Shown in pieces: positions 9,216 to 28,330 of a DNA stretch of 64,000 bases (position 1 is its first letter; each line of letters starts with the position of its first letter). Origin of the DNA: Orbicella franksi (Eukaryota); NCBI GenBank assembly GCA_964199315.1, contig OZ116702.1:26474001-26538000 (forward strand). Direction: 5' to 3'. The translations under genes were made by a program, and so were the position numbers. Below the pieces are notes generated by a model that saw only the letters and a program-made list of their open reading frames with translations, made no database searches and was not told the origin of the DNA.

Positions 9216-9914
9216 AAAGTGGTCGGGGCCACCTAGCAGAGGTGCTTGCGTAGTAAAGGTTCCAACTAGATTGATTTGACAAGTTAAAGTTTGGTATTTA
9301 ATGTGAGAAAGTGGTCGTTGTCGGGGAGATGGTCGCACAGGGTCGCTCAGGGAAGTAGGAGTGTATTAGGCACATTACTTTCACAAAAGCCATTTTAAGT
9401 CAACTAGAAAATAGGCTGTACTTTGAAGAACGTAAAGTTGGGGCCACCGTAAAGTGGTCGGGGCCACCTAGCAGAGGTGCTTGCTTAGTAAAGGTTCCAA
9501 CTAGATTGATTTGACAAGTTAAAGTTTGGTATTTAATGTGAGAAAGTGGTCGTTGTCGGGGAGATGGTCGCACAGGGTCGCTCAGGGAAGTAGGAGTGTA
9601 TTAGGCACATTACTTTCACAAAAGCCATTTTAAGTCAACTAGGAAATAGGCTGCACTTTGAAGAACGTAAAGTTGGGGCCACCGTAAAGTGGTCGGGGCC
9701 ACCTAGCAGAGGTGCTTGCTTAGTAAAGGTTCCAACTAGATTGATTTGACAAGTTAAAGTTTGGTATTTAATGTGAGAAAGTGGTCGTTGTCGGGGAGAT
9801 GGTCGCACAGGGTCGCTCAGGAAAGTAGGAGTGTATTAGGCACATTACTTTCACAAAAGCCATTTTAAGTCAACTAGGAAATAGGCTGTACTTTGAAGAA
9901 CGTAAAGTTGGGGC
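9216..9914. repeat. Tandem repeat, 3 x 235 bp
   Basis: Unit starts aaagtggtcggggccacctagcagagg at 9216, 9451 and 9686. The copies differ by only a few substitutions. Confidence 0.95.
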
Positions 9915-10281
9915 GTTTACAATGGTGACCACTTGCTAAAAAGAAATTTGATTGTTTATTCAACTATCGAAACAGAGAATATGCTCGAAACAAGAAGACA
10001 AATATGACAACCATCGAAACTAATGTGCGGGTAAATTATAAATGTCCTTCCTAGCTGTCCTTCGTCTCTCACTCCTAAAAACTTCTACACTGGAGCAGAA
10101 TAAACACCAGTGGCGTGGAAACTGTTGTTCGATGAAATGTCCCTTCAGTTGTCACGAGAGAGGCGAACGTCTCAATCTCATATTCTTATAACTATAAACA
10201 CATTTATAGCTTGCTTCCATTTGGATTGACTTTAGTTCACTTTAAGTGGGACTTCAACCTCTGTGTTTTTATTTGGAAATG

Positions 10282-10835
10282 CTAGTGACACATTGCAATG
10301 CCTGACAATAGCGCCCTCGTCTTGCGGCTGCGGTGGTGATGAATCACGGACTTCTTTCTACGACAGCACTGTGCTGGGCAAGGTGGAGCACAGTTTGTTG
10401 CGTAGCAACTCTGATCACATGACGCGGGTGGCGACTGCGGAATGACTGCGGGTTGAGCGTAACCAGCTGGGGGTTGGTACCCCGGCTGGGGTCCCATGGG
10501 GGGATATACCGGCTGGGGTCCCATAGGGGGAAATGGCTGGGGTGCCAATGGAGGTTGTGCTCCCATACAGCAGCTAGGTAGATAGGATGGGGCACATGTG
10601 TCCGGGCACGGGCCTGCCCCTGATCCCACTGGTGGGGTAGGGGGCGGAATGAGGACGTCCGCGCAACAGGTTTCACTGCACGATGGGGCACATCCAATCG
10701 GATCTTTGCATCTGGCGGGATCACAGTATCGAGGCTGGGGACAAGGGTTGTATGCAGCTGGAGGTCCCGGGTGTGGGTGACCTCCCAGAGGACCTACAAC
10801 CTTATATGGCAGTTTGGGTTGCTCTTGTGGTACTT
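10282..10835 (-). CDS. Gene B alternative last exon (isoform 2, 264 aa): second tri-CRD exon
   Basis: Strong polypyrimidine acceptor TAG|AA at 10836/10835 in phase 1, compatible with the donor at 12265. Encodes three CRD-like blocks, a stop at 10282 and AATAAA at 10268-10273. I found no signal exon or good donor between 10836 and 11480. Confidence 0.7.
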
Positions 10836-11479
10836 CTATAGAGAAAAGAGAAAGGAAAAGATTAGCTTGCAGCTCTGACAACAACATGACTTTAGACGTA
10901 GTTATTGGATTTTGATTACTTTTTTACCGCCAAACAATGTCTCATCGCAAGAGATTGCACAATTGCCTATTAGAATTTGAGGTCGAAGTTGAAAATCCAC
11001 GGAAGCTTAAGAACATCAAGGCTTCCGATCTTTAACCCGGTGGTAAAATAAAAAGAGCCAACACTGACATGTTTCAGTTCGAGTCGCGCTTTCTCTTCTT
11101 ATGCCTATCGGTTGTTGTCAAATATGCAAGCTTAGAGAACCAAGCCAGAAGTTAAAGATAGGAAGCCTTTTAAGTAGCAAGGGAGTCATTAAGCAGTTGA
11201 GAATTCCTAAGAGACGCGTTTCAAAATGTCATAGTCGCCGCAAATTTATTCCTTCAAATCACTTATAAAATCAATCTTTTATGACCACAAACCACAAATC
11301 ACGCTAAATTTGGTTTACATTTTGTTTGAAAAATTCTAAATTATCAAAAGTCAAATATCAATATGACTGTAGCATCCTTAGGACGAAGTAGAAATATGGG
11401 GTACGTTTCCTTGGCCGCAAGGAGTGGTACCCTTGTTCTATTTACAGCTGAACGTGTTGTCTAGGAAGTTTCAAAGGTG

Positions 11480-13822
11480 TTAGTGGTGGAAGTTTCGTTT
11501 GCTTGCGACTTTCTTAAGGTTTCCTCTCTTGTGGTGCTTGCAACATTGGGGTGGGCAGGTCGGTCCGCATCCATCGACACAGGTCTGTCCGCACAGTACA
11601 ACCGGAGGGCCAGCTGGTGGGGGAGGTGGAGGAGGAGGGGGAGGGGGTGGTGGTGGAGCTTGGCAGCAAGAGGGAAGGTTCATAGGAGCACAAACGGAGG
11701 GACAGGGAGCAGGCATGGGCATTGGCATGGGCATCGGTACGGGGCAAGCACTAGGGGGAGTGCATGGTGGCGGCACGGGTGTCATACAGCAGTTCTCCAT
11801 ACAGGCGGGTGCGCACACCTGAGGACATGTGCCAGGGCAGATTCGGGGCTCAGGTTTGGGGGTGGGGACTATAAGAGGAGGAGGTGCTTCACCTGTCTCT
11901 GTAGGTGGAGCTGTGAAGAAAAGAAAAGAAAGGAAAATTAATTGCAGCAATAGCAAGAGAAGGATAAGTAAATTACTAGAAGGACCCTATTGACCTCTTG
12001 GTTCCCTTTCAAAATTCTTCTTACAACGACCCGTCTCACTAATAAATTAAGGAACCCTAGGCCCCCTTTGGGAAGATCTTTTCATAAGTCTATTGCTTAT
12101 CTGGAAGTCTGATTGGCTGCATTGAAACCAACTACGGATCTATACAACTCCACGTTTGCAGTGTCAATTTTAAATCAAAGGCAAATCAGTTCAAATCGGT
12201 TGCACTGTTACATGAACCAAGCTAAAAGTATAAGGTACTCTGGTTAGCAACAATCAAGTTGTACCTTCTTCAGCGGAGCCAGATTCCTCTCCGCTTCCAG
12301 CTGCTGACCCACCTGTAAAAGCAAAAGAACATTCAGGCTCATAAAAATCATAATTATTATAAAATATAACATGATTCTGAATATGGATATCTAAAGAAAT
12401 ATTACATTGAATAGTTTAGTAACAAAACTAAACCTAAAAGTAAAAACAAAGTAAAAAACAACTAACCAACCAACCAACCAACCAACCAACCAAACAAACA
12501 AACAAACAAACAAACAAACAAACAAATGCAAAGAGAGCAAAAATGATATGCATCTCCGCTAAACATTCATTTTGAATTTTCTTAAAGGTAATTTGAAATA
12601 ATTTTAAAACAATGTTATGTAAATATGTATTTTTAAGAACCTCTCAGCCGGCAAATAACATATATGTATTTGCCTAGCATTATGAGGTGGTTGAGGGTCA
12701 AACGGTGAGTACAAGGACGAGTAATTCCAAATAATACCTCTGGCTCGGAAAGAAGTAAACTCGCGTTCCTTACGCTAGAATACCAACTTTGGAACTTATA
12801 CCAAAAGGAAGACGCTTGCGGGCAGCTAATAAACAAATGACGTATGTTTTGATTATCAGAGGGGCAGAAAGGGCAGGATGGGGAGGCAACCTTGTTCATT
12901 TTGCATAATATACTGTTCGTGGCTAAAATGTTGTGTATAATTTTGTGCTGGAACATTGCCAATTTAACTTCTTTTGTGGCTGTGAAAGGCAGAAGATAAA
13001 TTTTATTTAGATTCTCTTTTGTGATGCCGTATGATGAGAGTTTTTTTTCTGAAGTGGAAGGAGGAAGATTTTCTAAGGTTAACAGTTTGTCGTATAACAT
13101 CTTGCACGTTATAGTACAGATTGGTGGCGGGGGTGTAGTAGAGTCGCCAGAATTAACGTGAAGGAGCTTCTTCCAACTTTGAGGGATCGCAGATAAAAGA
13201 CTATGATATTGTAAAAAGTTGCAATTTAGCGTGTATTTATTGCGCAAGGAAAGGAAAGGCTGGAAGCAATTTTGATGCTCCTCAAAAAGGTCTGAAATTT
13301 ACTTTATACCTGCTCGGTGCCAATAAGGCAGATATACCGTTTTTTTGTCAATCGTAATGAATTTGTTGTTCCAGATTGTCTGAGACAGTATCTCGGTCTT
13401 GCTGTGAGGTGTCGTAGACACGATTTCTTACCAATGATGAATAATTTGTTAGTAAAATTCAGGAAGATGGCCATTAAGATCAAGAAAGTTGTGGTCATAA
13501 TTACATTGTAAGAACTCAGTGCCGCCGACAGTAGAGTGAAATGATTTTGGAATATACTTCCACGGTGCATCTGAGTCGGAGCACAGCCGTTTTAACCAAG
13601 TTAGTTTCAAAGCCTTATCGAAAAGAACAAACTCTTTCATGCCAAGACCGCCATCCGATTTCTTCTTGATGAGGGTTTTCTTTTTTATTTTGGCGGGTTT
13701 TTGCTTCCAGATGAAATCGAACACTATTTTATTGACCTCTGTTGCAAAGTTTTTTAGAGTCTCCATAACACTGGAGATAATAAAAGTTTGGAGAGGGCTA
13801 ACGTTTTAACAATATTTATTCT

Positions 13823-13853
<31 letters not shown>

Positions 13854-13895
13854 TCCAAATTAAGCAATTGGAAAGAAGAAGCCTGAAAAAAATCA

Positions 13896-13929
<34 letters not shown>

Positions 13930-14074
13930 GATACCGGTGCGATGCTCTACCAACTGAGCTATGAAGCCACACATTGGGAGCGAGGTCAATTTATTGAGTT
14001 CATATCTTCCCGTGAGGAGTGAAATGATGTGAAGTAAATATGAAATGATTCATATTTGAACTGCGGTTGTAGGT

Positions 14075-14105
<31 letters not shown>

Positions 14106-14149
14106 TCCAATTTAAGCAATTGGAAAGAAGAAGCCTGAAAAAAAAATCA

Positions 14150-14183
<34 letters not shown>

Positions 14184-14252
14184 GATACCGGTGCGATGCG
14201 TTGAAGCCCTGATTTTTTTTCAGGCTTCTTCTTTCCGATTGCTTAAATTGGA

Positions 14253-14283
<31 letters not shown>

Positions 14284-17060
14284 ACCTACAACCGCAGTTC
14301 AAATATGAATCATTTCATATTTACTTCACATAATATTTATTCTACCGTATATAGATAAGTCTCTTCGGGACCAGACACTTAAGGTTTTCTTTAGGGATCC
14401 TAATTTTTCAAAGAAATTTTTCTTATGAGACAATTCTAACTTTCTAAATTTTAACTTTCTACTTGTATCTTGGGATATTTGGTTCAAACATTGTTTTGCT
14501 AACTGCTTCTATGGGACTTAGGTGTTAAGCCACTATTTTATGCTAAGTTCTGAGATTGTACAGGGACCAAAGTTTCGCATTATCCACAGCAGTCCTACTT
14601 ACCAGCAGCACTGCCTGAGGCAGCTCCAGCTTCTTCGGCTTCGGGTTCTTCTGCGGCAGCAGCTTCATCATCCTGTTTCTTGCCTTCATCTGTGATAAAC
14701 GTAAAACAAAACATTCGAGCTCTGTTTTGCTTAGGGAGGAATTCTGAACTTATTCCTGCGAAGTCGGTTGAATTGGTTGCAAAGCTAATCACGCCCAAAA
14801 CTAAACCTTTTGTAGCATGATTTGGCCCACTTGAAGTTCCTCGGGCTCTTTTTTCACCAAATCATCGTTCAATTGTATTGATTTGCCTCCTTCAGAAACT
14901 GGTTCTATTTTTGCTTAACAACTATGACCAAACGGATACATTGTGAGACTGATCACTGTTCATGAGAGAAAAATAGTTGAAATCAGTCGAGTCAAAGCAA
15001 CTACGTCAAGCAAAACGAGTCAATGTTAGGTCAACGTAAGGCAAGAAATTTCAAGTGGTGTCAATTGAATTTAAGTGAAGTGCAGTCAGATCAAGGTAAG
15101 TGAATTGAAGCCGGGTCAGGTCAAGTTAAGTCAAACTAAATCAAAGGCTAACAAAACAAAAGCTATTTTCAGATCAGGAAAGAATTGATAAAGACTCCGG
15201 TTAACTTAAACTTGAAGGTGTCCGTTTTGGGGGAACGGTGCAGTGCATTTCTGCGTAAATCCAGACATTGGACGGGAAATGCGATAAAATTAAAAATTTC
15301 CCCAATAAATAGTGAAAAATTACGTTCTACAATTTTAAATCTGCCACAGAATTTAGGGCAGTTGAAATTCAAGGTATAGCACTGGAGATGAATGATTGCA
15401 AGCCCCAGATCCCCATACGTGTTTCAGTTGTGCCGTGTAAACGCTCGCAAAGTAGCAAAACGCATGCGTAGTTCACAATTACAATGCAATGAGAATTGTA
15501 ATGAGGGTCGGGATGAGGTTAAATTGAAAGCTTAGAAATGGAAAACATTTAAACTGTCTCGAAGCTGAGAAATGACGCTATTGTAAACTAATAGCTGAAA
15601 TATGAGACCTGCAAAATTCACTGATGGCTGAGAAATGGCTTGAAATTAGCTGAGAAATCGCCCAAATTTTAATTGATAACTGAATTTCTATCGACCACAT
15701 CCGGATCGTCTCGTACTTGGTAATACTTCTAAGAGCGAAAAAGGCCAACTATTTAGATAACTCTTACAAACCACTAGAAGTTAGGGGCGTCCCATCCACA
15801 TGCAGGGGTCAGTTGAAACGTGGACAAGAGAGCGAGTCATGTATTACCTTTCACGAGCCCAGAAGAAATGAGAGCTGTTAGAAGCTTACCGTGCTTGGAT
15901 TTCTTGTGTTTTCCTTTGGCAGTGCAGGAGAGAGAGAAAAAAAAGAAACATTTAAAACATAAACTTTACAATGTTTATTCGGAAGAAAAAGTATTGTTCG
16001 TATTTAGTTTATTATTTTTGCTGATGAGGAGTTATCAACAAGTTTCCAACTATATTTACTTGTTTGTACAGTACCTAACAATCAGTTATAATGCTGGAAG
16101 CTGTGAAGCTGTTTTAGGAGTTAATTCAATGAAGGAAATATCTTGTCTGTTTGGGGTATCAAACAAAACACCATCAATGTACCAGTTTTTGATATGAAGT
16201 TACTCTGTTTCACAAATCGAGTAAGCGAGATGCGAAGGGCTGGGCAAAATGACACAATAAGTATAATCTCAATCAGCCAGAATATTTGCAACTTTCTAAC
16301 GCATTCTGACACGTACGTGACATTGATTCTAAAATTAAGATTGGAAGAAAGCAATGGCTAAGTATGTGTAAATTAAAGTCAACTCAAAAAGTCATCGAGC
16401 CAAATTATAGATCACTTGAATTTTCCAATGTCTAATAGTCACTTCACAGCAACATTAAAATAAACAAGTGGTACAATCACTTGAAATTTTCTGAAAGTCA
16501 AAACACTGGGGAAACAAAGAAATACGTGGTAGAGTGAAAATTGCGGTGGGAACCAGCCAGCTCATTTTGTTTGTGATAGACGTCTCGGAACAATTTTGCG
16601 TTCCCCATCCGTTTTATTACTATGTGTACACTTATATAATACTCCTAACCCTATCTAGCAGTAAACTTCACATGGAAAATACCCCTTCAAAGAGCGTTTG
16701 AAATAAGCTAAAAAAAAAAAGACAATTATAGGTGTCCCATCATAGAAGATGAAGAGAACAACACATTGAATGCAATGAAATATTAACTCGTTGAACTTAT
16801 CCAACCGTGGCACAAAGAAATGCAGTTAAGTTGGGTTGATATGCTTTCTAGACAAATAAAAGCACAGAAGATGTTTCTGCTTTCAGACTCACTGGCATTA
16901 ATGGAAAAAAAAAAAATTTCTTTTTTCTTAAACCACAATGCGATCAATTTGAGATACGTCCAAGAAAGATTCGCTTACCTTTTAGTGACTTGGCATCCAC
17001 ATTCAATGTGGAAAGAGTTAGACCTAAAAGCACGAGAAATACGAAAAATCTAAGCCTCAT
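11480..17060 (-). CDS. Gene B isoform 1: secreted collagen-less tri-CRD protein with acidic Ser-Gly region (cnidocyst wall/tubule candidate), 223 aa
   Basis: Exons 17060-16979 (signal MRLRFFVFLVLLGLTLSTLNVDA-KSLK), 15913-15890 (24-nt microexon KHKKSKH), 14689-14603, 12312-12265 and 11910-11480. All introns are phase 1 GT-AG. CRDs CPGTCPQVCAPACMENCC and CGQTCVDGCGPTCPPQCC are canonical, with polyPro between them. AATAAA on the minus strand at 11245-11250. Confidence 0.85.
12464..13790 (-). mobile_element. 5'-truncated, frameshifted L1/Tx1-like LINE with (AACC)n(AAAC)n tail region, inside a gene B intron
   Basis: ORF fragments 13449-13766 (FDFIWKQKP.KIKK..L...KSDGGL), 13304-13570 and 12633-13247 (zf-RVT-like CPFCPSDNQNIRHLFISC). 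Microsatellite at ~12464-12526. Confidence 0.85.
13823..14331. mobile_element. tRNA-derived repeat insertion: tandem unit plus inverted copy, 12-bp target-site duplication
   Basis: 252-bp unit starts at 13823 and 14075. Minus-strand tRNA-like core at 13897-13968. Inverted arms 14027-14160 / 14199-14331. Flanked by direct AATATTTATTCT at 13811-13822 and 14332-14343. Confidence 0.85.
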
Positions 17061-23506: not shown

Positions 23507-24421
23507 TTACTTTCCTGGAGGTGGCACCACGGCACAGCACGGGCTTGGGGGACCAGGAGGTGCAGGCGGTCCGGGTGGTCCGGGGGGGCCTGGTGGTCCT
23601 GGGGCTCCGGCGGCCCCTGGAGGCCCTTGACCTCCCGCCACTCCTGGCGGTCCCTGTGATCCGGGATGTCCAGCAATTCCATAAATCGGAGGCGGAGCAG
23701 GCTTCATTTGGTCTGCGACTTGCGGAATGGGTGGATTTGGTCCGGCTGGGGGAGGACTGCCACAGCAGGATGCTGTACATGTTGGGGCGCAAGCTGGAGT
23801 GCAGCTCGCTCCACAGGGGAAGGCAGAACGCTTTGCTGTGAAACGGGGCAGAGGTTCAGAAGGATTTTGTCATTTAGAAAATCTGAGAAGATCTTTCTTT
23901 AACGTTCATTGACCCAGTGGCACCACATGTTTATCTTACAGATTACGTATATTTAAAACTACCATCTTAAACGCAATCAGTCAGTCAGTCAGTCAGTCAG
24001 TTAATAGTCAGTCAGTCAGTCAGTCAGTCAGTCAGTCAGTCAGGCGGTTGGTCGGTCCGTCAGTCAGTCAGTCAGTTGGTCAGTTAGTCAGTTAATAGTC
24101 AGTCAGTCAGTCAGTCAAACGGTTGGTCGGTCGCTTTGTTAGTCAGTCAGTAAGTTACCAATCAATCCGTCTCTCTATCTCTATTTATCAGATAACAATG
24201 TTAAATAATGAGGACTTATCACATTCAGTAGGTGTGCAACGGAAGCCCTATTCTGGATATAAGTGGTGTACTAAACATGCTGGCAGTATAACTAAATAAT
24301 GTTTTTGATAGCTAGATGTTCGCATAACAAATAACGGCCTATACATTTGACACTTACTGTGCAAAGCTGAGGCGGTGTAGGCAAGGCCTAACGTGAATAA
24401 CAGAGCTAAACGACAATCCAT
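23507..24421 (-). CDS. Gene D: minicollagen with canonical N-CRD, 13 Gly-X-Y and reduced C-terminus (CC only), 130 aa
   Basis: Exons 24421-24358 ([21 protein letters not shown]) and 23835-23507 ([24 protein letters not shown]...13 [21 protein letters not shown]). 5'UTR donor CAG|GTAAGA at 24805/24804. Confidence 0.9.
23977..24150. repeat. (CAGT)n microsatellite with interrupted higher-order units, in gene D intron
   Basis: cagtcagtcagt runs interrupted by ttaatagt and cggttggtcggt blocks that occur twice. Confidence 0.9.
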
Positions 24422-26917: not shown

Positions 26918-28330
26918 TTAACGTCCAGGGGGCCCTGGGGGTCCGGGTGGTCCAGGAGGTCCTACACATCCGGGACATCCTTTGGGTCCATTTGGCCCTG
27001 GCAATCCACATATACCATCAAAACCGGGAGGTCCTGGGATTAACTGTGGTGTGGGAGCCGGAAACGGGGGAGGCGGCGGAGGTGGCGGAGGATACGGAGG
27101 AGGAAGACGGGAGGCGCAGCAGGAAAATATGCATCCCCTTTTACAAACGTTCGTGCAGCACTTCCTACAGCATGACCTAGAACAAGGCAGAGGGTTGCTT
27201 CTCAAGACTTTGTTAACTGAAATGATTGCAAAGAGAATATCTTTGTCAATTTGGTTGTTAAAAAGGTTACAAAATTGATAAAGTTGCAAGTTAAATCAGA
27301 TTAAGAATGTTAAAAGTCTAATTCACAATTATTTCACTCGCAGTTGCTGGATATGAGATGGTAGATAGCCAACGAGGCGCGTAGCGTTGAGTTGGCTATA
27401 ACTATCTCATATACAACAAACGCAAGTGGACTAATAGTTTTTATTAAAAACGCCCCCAAAATATTGAAAACGTAAGACGTACGTTTACCATATTTGTAGA
27501 GCGTGATATAATGGCTCATATACCATGATGGCTAAGCCAATGAAATCTCTTGAATTGCATTATCTAATGATCTAGTTTTTAATAAGCTTGATTATTTCGA
27601 GGAAGTTTAGACAGTTTTTTTTTTTCAATTGGCAACGGTTAACGTTGTGTCACCCAAATAATATAGCTTATCCACCACCAGTATTGTTTTTTTTTTCTAA
27701 AGTACTTGGCAAAAATTGACTACCACCTTTGGAGGGACATTTACCAACGTGGCTTATGTGCAAATGATACCAAAACCAATTAGTATGTTTCGACAGACTC
27801 TGTTAAAATGTTTAGCCCCTTAATATAGCTTAATATCATTCAAAACCTTGAATAATGATGGCACTTGTTATTAGTTTTCTTGCTTGTGCCAATCAACTAT
27901 AAACTAGCATTGTTTATATAGCTGGTGAGTGACAATTAATATGAATTATGACGCTGAGAAATGAAAGTGCATCATCACATTAGTTTTCTTAATAAACTTA
28001 AGGGGATCTTTCATTCATTTAAAAACAAATAGTTAAATACAAGTTTTTGCTCCGTAAAGCTCTTGATTTTTTTTATAGATTTTCAAAAGCTGGTTGAGTT
28101 ATTTATCATAAATGACAGGTATGATCGGGGAATCAGTAATAACGTGCTTGATTTTGCTGTCTTAGAAAGAAGAAAGATTAAATCAACTGACAGTAACATA
28201 GAACAAAAATTAGCTGTTAATATATTTTTCATTTGATGAAAAAGAACTTACCGAATTCTTCCATTGGTTTTCCATTAGCAACATAGATCACAGATATAAA
28301 CACCGCTAAGACTGCTATCTTAATGTCCAT
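26918..28330 (-). CDS. Gene E: minicollagen with 9-Cys basic N-terminal domain, 12 Gly-X-Y and no C-terminal CRD, 125 aa
   Basis: Exons 28330-28252 (MDIKIAVLAVFISVIYVANG-KPMEEF) and 27216-26918 (CSRSCCRKCCTNVCKRGCIFSCC, polyPro, [38 protein letters not shown]). AATAAA at 26831-26836. Confidence 0.85.
27334..27600. repeat. Interspersed hairpin-containing repeat in gene E intron
   Basis: Imperfect palindrome gatatgagat..atagccaac..gttggctata..atctcatat. It resembles a common coral repeat (recognition only). Confidence 0.5.

Follow-up and report, generated by a model that had tools for sequence, protein, structure and literature searches.

This study was concerned with a minus-strand gene, here called gene B, in a 64,000-nucleotide stretch of the Orbicella franksi genome (contig OZ116702.1, positions 26,474,001 to 26,538,000), which is referred to as the window. 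Gene B encodes a small secreted protein and carries two long exons rich in proline and cysteine at its 3' end, exon 5a (11910-11480) and exon 5b (10835-10282), which encode tail A and tail B. All coordinates are window positions and, for gene B, refer to the minus strand throughout. Gene B is very probably one conserved composite-exon gene that yields the two tails by a choice between splicing and intronic polyadenylation, as judged from its junctions, the abundance of both transcripts and the conservation of both tails and their processing signals; what the tails do and how the choice may be regulated are proposals built on these data. The last two coding exons would represent an old tandem duplication in a single-copy gene, and all transcripts would enter the composite exon at 11910 after exon 4 (donor 12265). 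If the internal donor at 11892 is left unused, tail A would be read through and the transcript cleaved after the AATAAA at 11250-11245, giving isoform A. If the donor is used, tail B would be joined in frame, giving isoform B. The choice of tail would be a competition between a weak internal donor and a poly(A) site 640 nucleotides (nt) downstream.

RNA was mapped to positions 9900-12420 from two runs of raw poly(A) reads and two sets of RNA contigs (X1 and X3). The raw-read run X24 gave 472 mapped poly(A) reads, 381 of them at least 99% identical; this run and the two contig sets came from three studies. The donor at 11892 behaved as that of a composite exon, since it was both used (31 joint reads and 28 loose-end reads) and read through (in the X1 contig, in the 5a unitig of X3 and in the X24 depth). 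The X24 depth was approximately 125 in exon 4, which is the true depth there, 45-59 in exon 5a, 20-45 in exon 5b and no more than 2 across 11174-10920. The X1 contig covers 12313-12265, continues with four unplaced letters and then runs from 11906 downwards, unspliced at 11892. The X3 assembly graph splits exactly after the first 18 nt of exon 5a, where a shared unitig with a depth of 176 gives way to a 5a path (87.9), which ends at 11237, and a 5b path (62.1), which begins with the 18 nt and exon 4. The two isoforms are roughly equally abundant, with an A:B ratio of approximately 59:41 in X3 and a similar ratio in X24. A preliminary description of this DNA had proposed that one N-terminus is coupled to either of two paralogous tails of cysteine-rich domains (CRDs). 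This proposal was borne out, the shared N-terminus being composed of a signal peptide and an acidic Ser/Gly-rich region, and both forms are abundant in poly(A) RNA.

The X24 depth in 11855-11906 matches that of the rest of exon 5a. Further downstream it falls from 35-49 (bins in 11345-11514) to 18 (11260-11344), to approximately 3 (11175-11259) and to 2 or less (11174-10920). Exon 5a does not represent simple intron retention, because the depth across 11174-10920 is 2 or less, and the profile resembles that of an mRNA that has been cleaved and polyadenylated, unlike that of a retained intron. The 3' untranslated region (UTR) of isoform A (11479-11237) contains UGUAAAUA at 11446-11439 and the AATAAA at 11250-11245, and its RNA end appears to lie at about 11237. 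The 3' UTR of isoform B (10281-9955) contains a proximal AATAAA at 10273-10268, which is passed over, and a distal AATAAA at 9960-9955, with the RNA end at approximately 10030-9955. The depth there is 27-28 in 10070-10239, 16 in 9985-10069 and 3 in 9900-9984, and the contigs end at 10026 (X3) and 9954 (X1). Each long exon had been credited with an AATAAA of its own. Both signals are present and the one at 11250-11245 is apparently used, but the one at 10273-10268 is not the main 3' end, as reads go approximately 250 nt further. A separate observation concerns UGUAAAUA, which we take to be a Pumilio-type motif. It lies 18-36 nt past the tail A stop codon in four of five coral lineages (at 11439-11446 in the window and at the equivalent positions of L001, L002 and L009) and is absent from the Acropora-like locus. 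The motif may give isoform-specific post-transcriptional control.

Exon 5a is preceded by a pyrimidine tract and CAG, is entered in phase 1 and encodes 142 amino acids up to a TAA at 11482-11480. It contains 18 Cys, with two canonical CX3CX3CX3CX3CC blocks (11839-11786 and 11593-11540) and a degenerate block of six Cys between them. A run of 14 Pro separates the degenerate middle block from the last CRD. The part specific to isoform A (11892-11480; X24 depth 45-59) reads CRD, degenerate CRD, Pro14, CRD, basic and His-rich tail, stop codon. A pyrimidine tract and TAG stand before exon 5b, which is likewise entered in phase 1 and encodes 183 amino acids up to a TAG at 10284-10282. Its 18 Cys are distributed over an irregular block of seven, a half block of four, a CX3CX4CX3CX3CC block and a single Cys in the basic and His-rich tail. 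The coding part (10835-10282; X24 depth 20-45) consists of a 7-Cys CRD, a half CRD, a spacer, a CRD and a basic/His tail with the final Cys. The spacer has 49 residues, including 18 Pro, 7 Gln, 6 Ala, 5 Gly, 3 Tyr and 3 Met. A loosened CRD pattern, with two to five residues between Cys, matched only seven times in the six-frame translation of the 64 kb, and all seven matches are on the minus strand in exon-like open reading frames (ORFs). The two tails are fairly called paralogous because they align collinearly from end to end (BLASTP E 1e-9, 32% identity). The coordinates, phase-1 acceptors, 18 Cys, CRD blocks, basic/His tails and separate stop codons that the preliminary description had given for the two exons are all present in the sequence.

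The arrangement was compared in genomic contigs of five lineages: the window, L001, L002, an Acropora-like lineage (L006-L008) and a Desmophyllum-like lineage (L009). In all four of the other lineages an exon of the 5a type lies 0.6-1.2 kb upstream of an exon of the 5b type on the same strand. The tail B ORF of L009 is almost identical to a Desmophyllum pertusum model. Three additional contigs (L010-L012) are unspliced, either genomic or precursor, and are uninformative on junctions. In all five lineages the exon starts as CAG/CTCC, and the internal AG/GT is invariant, following after 18, 15, 18, 18 and 18 nt. The tail A ORF has 135-142 codons up to its basic/His end, all 18 of its Cys are conserved in the five-lineage alignment, and an AATAAA lies 210-232 nt past the 5a stop codon. 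A branch-point-like GCTAAY motif and a pyrimidine tract precede the 5b acceptor in the five lineages. Pairwise comparisons of the window, L001 and L002 gave a ratio of nonsynonymous to synonymous change (dN/dS) of 0.06-0.10 for both tails, with synonymous change (dS) of 0.9 to more than 2. The full GTRAGT consensus is missing at the internal donor in all five lineages, and the first three donors of the gene read GTAAG. Tail B has 12 relatives in the databases, all of them from stony corals. Corals of the Acropora, Montipora and Porites types, placed in the "complex" clade of stony corals, share the arrangement with a Desmophyllum-like coral of the "robust" clade. If this clade assignment holds, the arrangement would predate the deepest split in the stony corals. 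Separately, the 5b-type exon of the more distant coral L002 (7993-8060) starts with an extra half CRD, CPVHCQPACVPSC, which is missing in the window and in L001, so that tail B shows evolutionary plasticity at its start.

These data bear on the alternative that isoform A is a functionless by-product of premature intronic polyadenylation and that only isoform B matters. The public record agrees with this alternative, as all orthologue models in the databases are of the B type; the RefSeq isoforms X1 and X2 differ only by an insert of 14-15 residues near the N-terminus. Two protein libraries built from approximately 15 billion public predicted proteins were searched. Tail A gave 68 candidates, none of them significant, among 5.8 billion cluster representatives. 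A tail A profile built from three sequences and run exhaustively against 1.84 billion representatives found only two proteins, neither with an A-type tail: P0013, an unnamed multi-CRD protein (E 2e-6), and P0014, which was rejected as a chance match to a long protein rich in Pro and Cys. However, this absence has a technical explanation. Gene prediction on the Logan contigs had placed an antisense ORF over the CCN-rich DNA of exon 5a, and tail A is absent from the Logan predictions because of this antisense call and because the 5a exon has no ATG. In addition, the intact ORF with its 18 conserved Cys and its AATAAA at a constant position, the low dN/dS of tail A in spite of saturated synonymous change, and an RNA at least as abundant as that of isoform B all speak against a by-product, which we regard as improbable. 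Thus, a poly-Pro isoform at least as abundant as the annotated one appears to be unannotated in the libraries searched.

The preliminary description had taken exons 5a and 5b for last exons that exclude each other, both of them joined without an intermediate to the donor at 12265, in the manner of skipped terminal exons. Good phase-1 acceptors are indeed present at both exons, and by arithmetic each would be in frame with this donor. The RNA, however, joins exon 5b by another route, through 18 nt of exon 5a. The only joint tabulated in X24 connects 12265 to 10837 and is covered by 33 reads. Two of these reads have no letters recorded between the two sides, as direct joining would require. In the other 31 there are 16 letters between the sides, which are the reverse complement of 11910-11895, and the AG that follows them was assigned by the aligner to 10837-10836, the AG of the intron itself. 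The same sequence is carried by 28 loose-end reads (24 at 12265 and 4 at 10837), and the X3 contig has the segment as well. The 16 intervening letters and the misplaced AG therefore define the path of isoform B as 12265/11910, the 18 nt at 11910-11893, and 11893/10835. The direct junction from 12265 to 10835 that had been suggested as a check was not supported. Splicing of 11893 to 10835 keeps the frame and removes 1057 nt. The segment of 18 nt is the shared start of the composite exon in both isoforms and, with one base from exon 4, codes for APPTET. The internal 5' splice site at 11892-11887 (CAG/GTGAAG) is used in isoform B and is read as Gly and Glu codons in isoform A, and the last intron of isoform B (11892-10836) contains the whole A-specific coding part, the 3' UTR and the poly(A) site.

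The same six-residue segment precedes tail B in RefSeq models of three genera, which also counts against direct joining. The orthologue models have APPTES, APPVES or APPPTE between the Ser/Gly region and tail B, and those that carry the segment are from Acropora millepora/muricata, A. palmata, Montipora foliosa/capricornis, Porites lutea and P. harrisoni. They are 67-75% identical to the conceptual isoform B and collinear with it from the first residue. Taken with the joint and loose-end reads that carry the start of exon 5a before exon 5b, these models leave the mutually exclusive arrangement very improbable. An Acropora cervicornis model (P0005), in which exon 5b follows approximately 22 codons of exon 5a instead of 6, was set aside as a prediction artefact, as three other Acropora species in RefSeq use the 6-codon segment. 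A Desmophyllum pertusum model (P0011) also looks mis-built, starting with an apparent out-of-frame reading just upstream of tail B. The least likely alternative places exon 5b in a second gene, downstream of the first, that has a separate promoter and 5' exon. A same-strand cluster of CRD genes in the window makes this plausible in principle, but the orthologue models give tail B the same signal peptide, all loose ends at the 5b acceptor run into the 18 nt and exon 4 with no other sequence seen among them, and the 400 nt upstream of exon 5b have a depth of 2 or less. The earlier statement that exon 5b has no 5' exon of its own thus agrees with the reads.

Several points weigh against the composite-exon reading of gene B. 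Only one of the two raw-read runs, X24, yielded reads; the other, X22, yielded zero and hence provides no test. The species label of X24 differs from the best DNA match, though 381 of its 472 reads are at least 99% identical. The junction 12265/11910 is untabulated, as joints that touch the pyrimidine tract at 11907-11972 were masked as repeat, and it rests on the X1 contig, the X3 unitig depths and the X24 depth profile. No A-tailed reads are listed near 11237, and the cleavage site was placed from the drop in depth, the contig end and the conserved AATAAA. The conservation of the donor GT is only partly independent evidence, since the GT forms bases 2-3 of a conserved Gly codon. This codon is GGT in all five lineages and is one of only 7 among 54 conserved four-fold codons with an unchanged third base (a background of 13%). 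As the site is coding as well, its conservation is suggestive and not decisive. Lastly, the CRD assignment draws on the Cys pattern and on weak PDB E-values, with an empty Pfam result.

The PDB matches were obtained with the CRD peptides of exon 5a. The first CRD best matched 1zpx, the N-terminal CRD of Hydra minicollagen-1, and the last CRD best matched 1sp7, the C-terminal CRD of the same protein, with all six Cys in register in each case. The E-values of these matches, 0.24 and 2.5, are weak, which is usual when a peptide has only approximately 20 residues. The best matches overall were 1zpx, 1sp7, 1sop, 2hm6 and 2nx6 (E 0.24-9), with Cys in register, and the CRDs of NOWA ranked next to those of minicollagen-1. 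The last CRD of exon 5b had no PDB match, and the whole tails found nothing useful among the PDB sequences. A search with hmmscan at E-values up to 10 found no Pfam family for either tail, including C_tripleX (PF02363). Nematode C_tripleX clusters were obtained as sub-threshold, feature-based leads from the ESM Atlas (0.76-0.82) and were rejected, being read as shared Cys periodicity and not as kinship. Minicollagens have a central collagen repeat of about 12-16 Gly-X-Y triplets. Neither conceptual isoform contains a Gly-X-Y run, and the protein is not a minicollagen because this repeat is lacking in both. Its CRD pattern, poly-Pro stretch and signal peptide, together with the missing Gly-X-Y and the CRD-bearing neighbours, point to a cnidocyst structural protein as the product of gene B.

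CRDs polymerize through the exchange of disulfides and occur in two folds, N-type and C-type, that are unlike in valency (PMC4863159). The C-type fold is favoured by Val or Ile at position 4 and Pro at position 14, counted from the first Cys (PMC4863159). By this rule the first CRD of tail A, with Thr4 and Met14, appears to be N-type. In both tails the last CRD has the Pro after the fourth Cys and lacks Val/Ile4. Both proteins may become part of the wall or the tubule of cnidocysts through disulfide exchange between CRDs. The tails could then act as cross-linkers with different CRD sets and different spacers, a stiff poly-Pro in tail A and a longer, more flexible one in tail B, and the A:B ratio may be regulated. 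That a developing cnidocyte switches between stiff tail A and compliant tail B, and in this way sets the properties of its wall or tubule by cnida type, is a tentative suggestion that we consider rather unlikely.

Alternative 3' parts of nematocyst genes have already been described in Hydra, and the coral gene extends this known theme. The title of the paper on nematogalectin, a hydrozoan gene of a different protein family from gene B, reportedly announces nematocyte-specific alternative splicing. A mechanistic parallel is found in the secreted and membrane forms of vertebrate immunoglobulin mu, in which splicing at a weak 5' splice site inside an exon is in competition with polyadenylation in the intron after it. 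Immunoglobulin mu produces two C-termini from one gene by this competition between splicing and polyadenylation, as the coral gene would also do. The coral C-termini, however, are both paralogous and equally complex domain arrays, in contrast to a short secretory tail and a membrane anchor. Composite terminal exons as a general class have been reviewed (PMC13721586). In the Hydra spinalin/nb054 gene the short product, spinalin, stops inside an exon, and the longer nb054 variants arise when the transcript is spliced from a site within exon 6 (PMC2687796). This nematocyte gene follows the same composite-exon logic, but its proteins have no relation to those of gene B, and its downstream exons do not duplicate the read-through part. 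The Hydra genes nb012a and nb012b (NSP2) have one 5' exon in common and similar, apparently duplicated 3' exons (PMC6134521). They differ from the coral gene in that their remaining exons are described as occupying separate regions of DNA, with no mention of a composite exon, and in that they are hydrozoan genes of another protein family. In a full-text search of the open literature, no report was found of a switch of this kind in anthozoans or in any CRD/poly-Pro protein.

In architecture alone, the nearest counterpart of isoform A is Hydra CPP-1, a capsule wall protein in which a rigid poly-Pro stretch is flanked by CRDs (PMC6910907). Both are secreted, have a CRD...Pro14...CRD type of layout (Pro14 being that of isoform A) and have no collagen triple helix. 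Irregular Cys spacing also occurs in CPP-1, in which the N-terminal CRD peptide reads CX3CX5CX3CX3CC, and no alternative tail is reported for it (PMC6910907). The coral protein differs in its acidic Ser/Gly-rich N-terminal region, its third, degenerate CRD and its second, alternative tail. Minicollagens of the NCol family share with the coral protein a signal peptide, poly-Pro and CX3CX3CX3CX3CC domains, of which exon 5a has two exact copies and exon 5b a single copy with a loop of 4 residues plus two irregular blocks. In contrast to minicollagens, the coral isoforms are without Gly-X-Y and are comparable at most to the "minicollagen-like" proteins of the Nematostella matrisome, whose minicollagen features are incomplete (PMC12549020).

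The proposed switch would matter for several reasons. First, the walls of cnidocysts are disulfide-linked copolymers, and their mechanics depend on the mix of CRD-bearing proteins. Secondly, stiff CPP-1 and elastic cnidoin are products of separate genes in Hydra, whereas the coral would obtain two cross-linkers from one gene in approximately equal amounts. Third, the splice-or-polyadenylate step offers an experimentally tractable way to ask how anthozoans could vary the material of their capsules while adding no genes. Lastly, the annotation gap affects a conserved and expressed isoform on which purifying selection acts, and it has a practical consequence, in that proteomic and single-cell work on corals that uses the current models will miss isoform A or mis-assign its 3'-end reads.

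The N-terminal part common to both isoforms is encoded by four exons. The coding part of exon 1 (17060-16979), which was placed by sequence, starts with the ATG at 17060, encodes the signal peptide and ends in KSLK before GTAAGC. The hydrophobic N-terminus, a putative signal peptide, ends in VDA. From residue 1 of this exon onwards the conceptual isoform B is collinear with the RefSeq models of Acropora, Montipora and Porites. Exon 2 (15913-15890; 24 nt), also placed by sequence, is basic (KHKKSKH); both exons lie outside the 9900-12420 covered by read mapping. The X3 contig has 116 loose letters past exon 4, which from their lengths would fit exon 3 (87), exon 2 (24) and 5 nt. Exon 3 (14689-14603; 87 nt) is acidic, rich in Ala and Glu, and was placed by linking reads: 104 X24 reads end at 12313 and continue as the reverse complement of the end of exon 3, and the same link is present in the X1 and X3 contigs. 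Exon 4 (12312-12265; 48 nt), placed by depth, junctions and sequence, is rich in Ser, Gly and Glu and has its donor at 12264. The assembled isoforms are open in frame, with 223 amino acids in A, 270 in B and 18 Cys in each, all of which sit in the respective long exon. Both tails are single copy in the 497-Mb genome.

Additional observations were made around the gene. Exons 3-4 (14689-12265), both of which are present in mRNA, encode an acidic region with several Ser-Gly pairs. An in-frame extension of exon 2 by 42 nt (15889-15848), up to a second GT at 15847, is possible and would add GKLLTALISSGLVK. At this site the RefSeq isoforms X1 of Montipora foliosa/capricornis and Porites lutea have a homologous insert of 14-15 residues, and the extension looks like a conserved alternative 5' splice site. 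Intron 3 (14602-12313) is full of repeat debris, including a (TTTG/TTGG)n microsatellite at approximately 12440-12530, a reverse-transcriptase-like ORF at 13247-12633 and a tRNA-like element present as an inverted duplicate at approximately 13850-14330. On another contig of the same genome there is a weak paralogue of tail A (L005, G000:C1:9834038-9834415; 32% identity, E 1e-4) with a single tail only. Further matches to the CRD pattern lie at 27116-27172, 23762-23815 and 199-258 of the window, all on the minus strand, and form a same-strand cluster of CRD-bearing genes.

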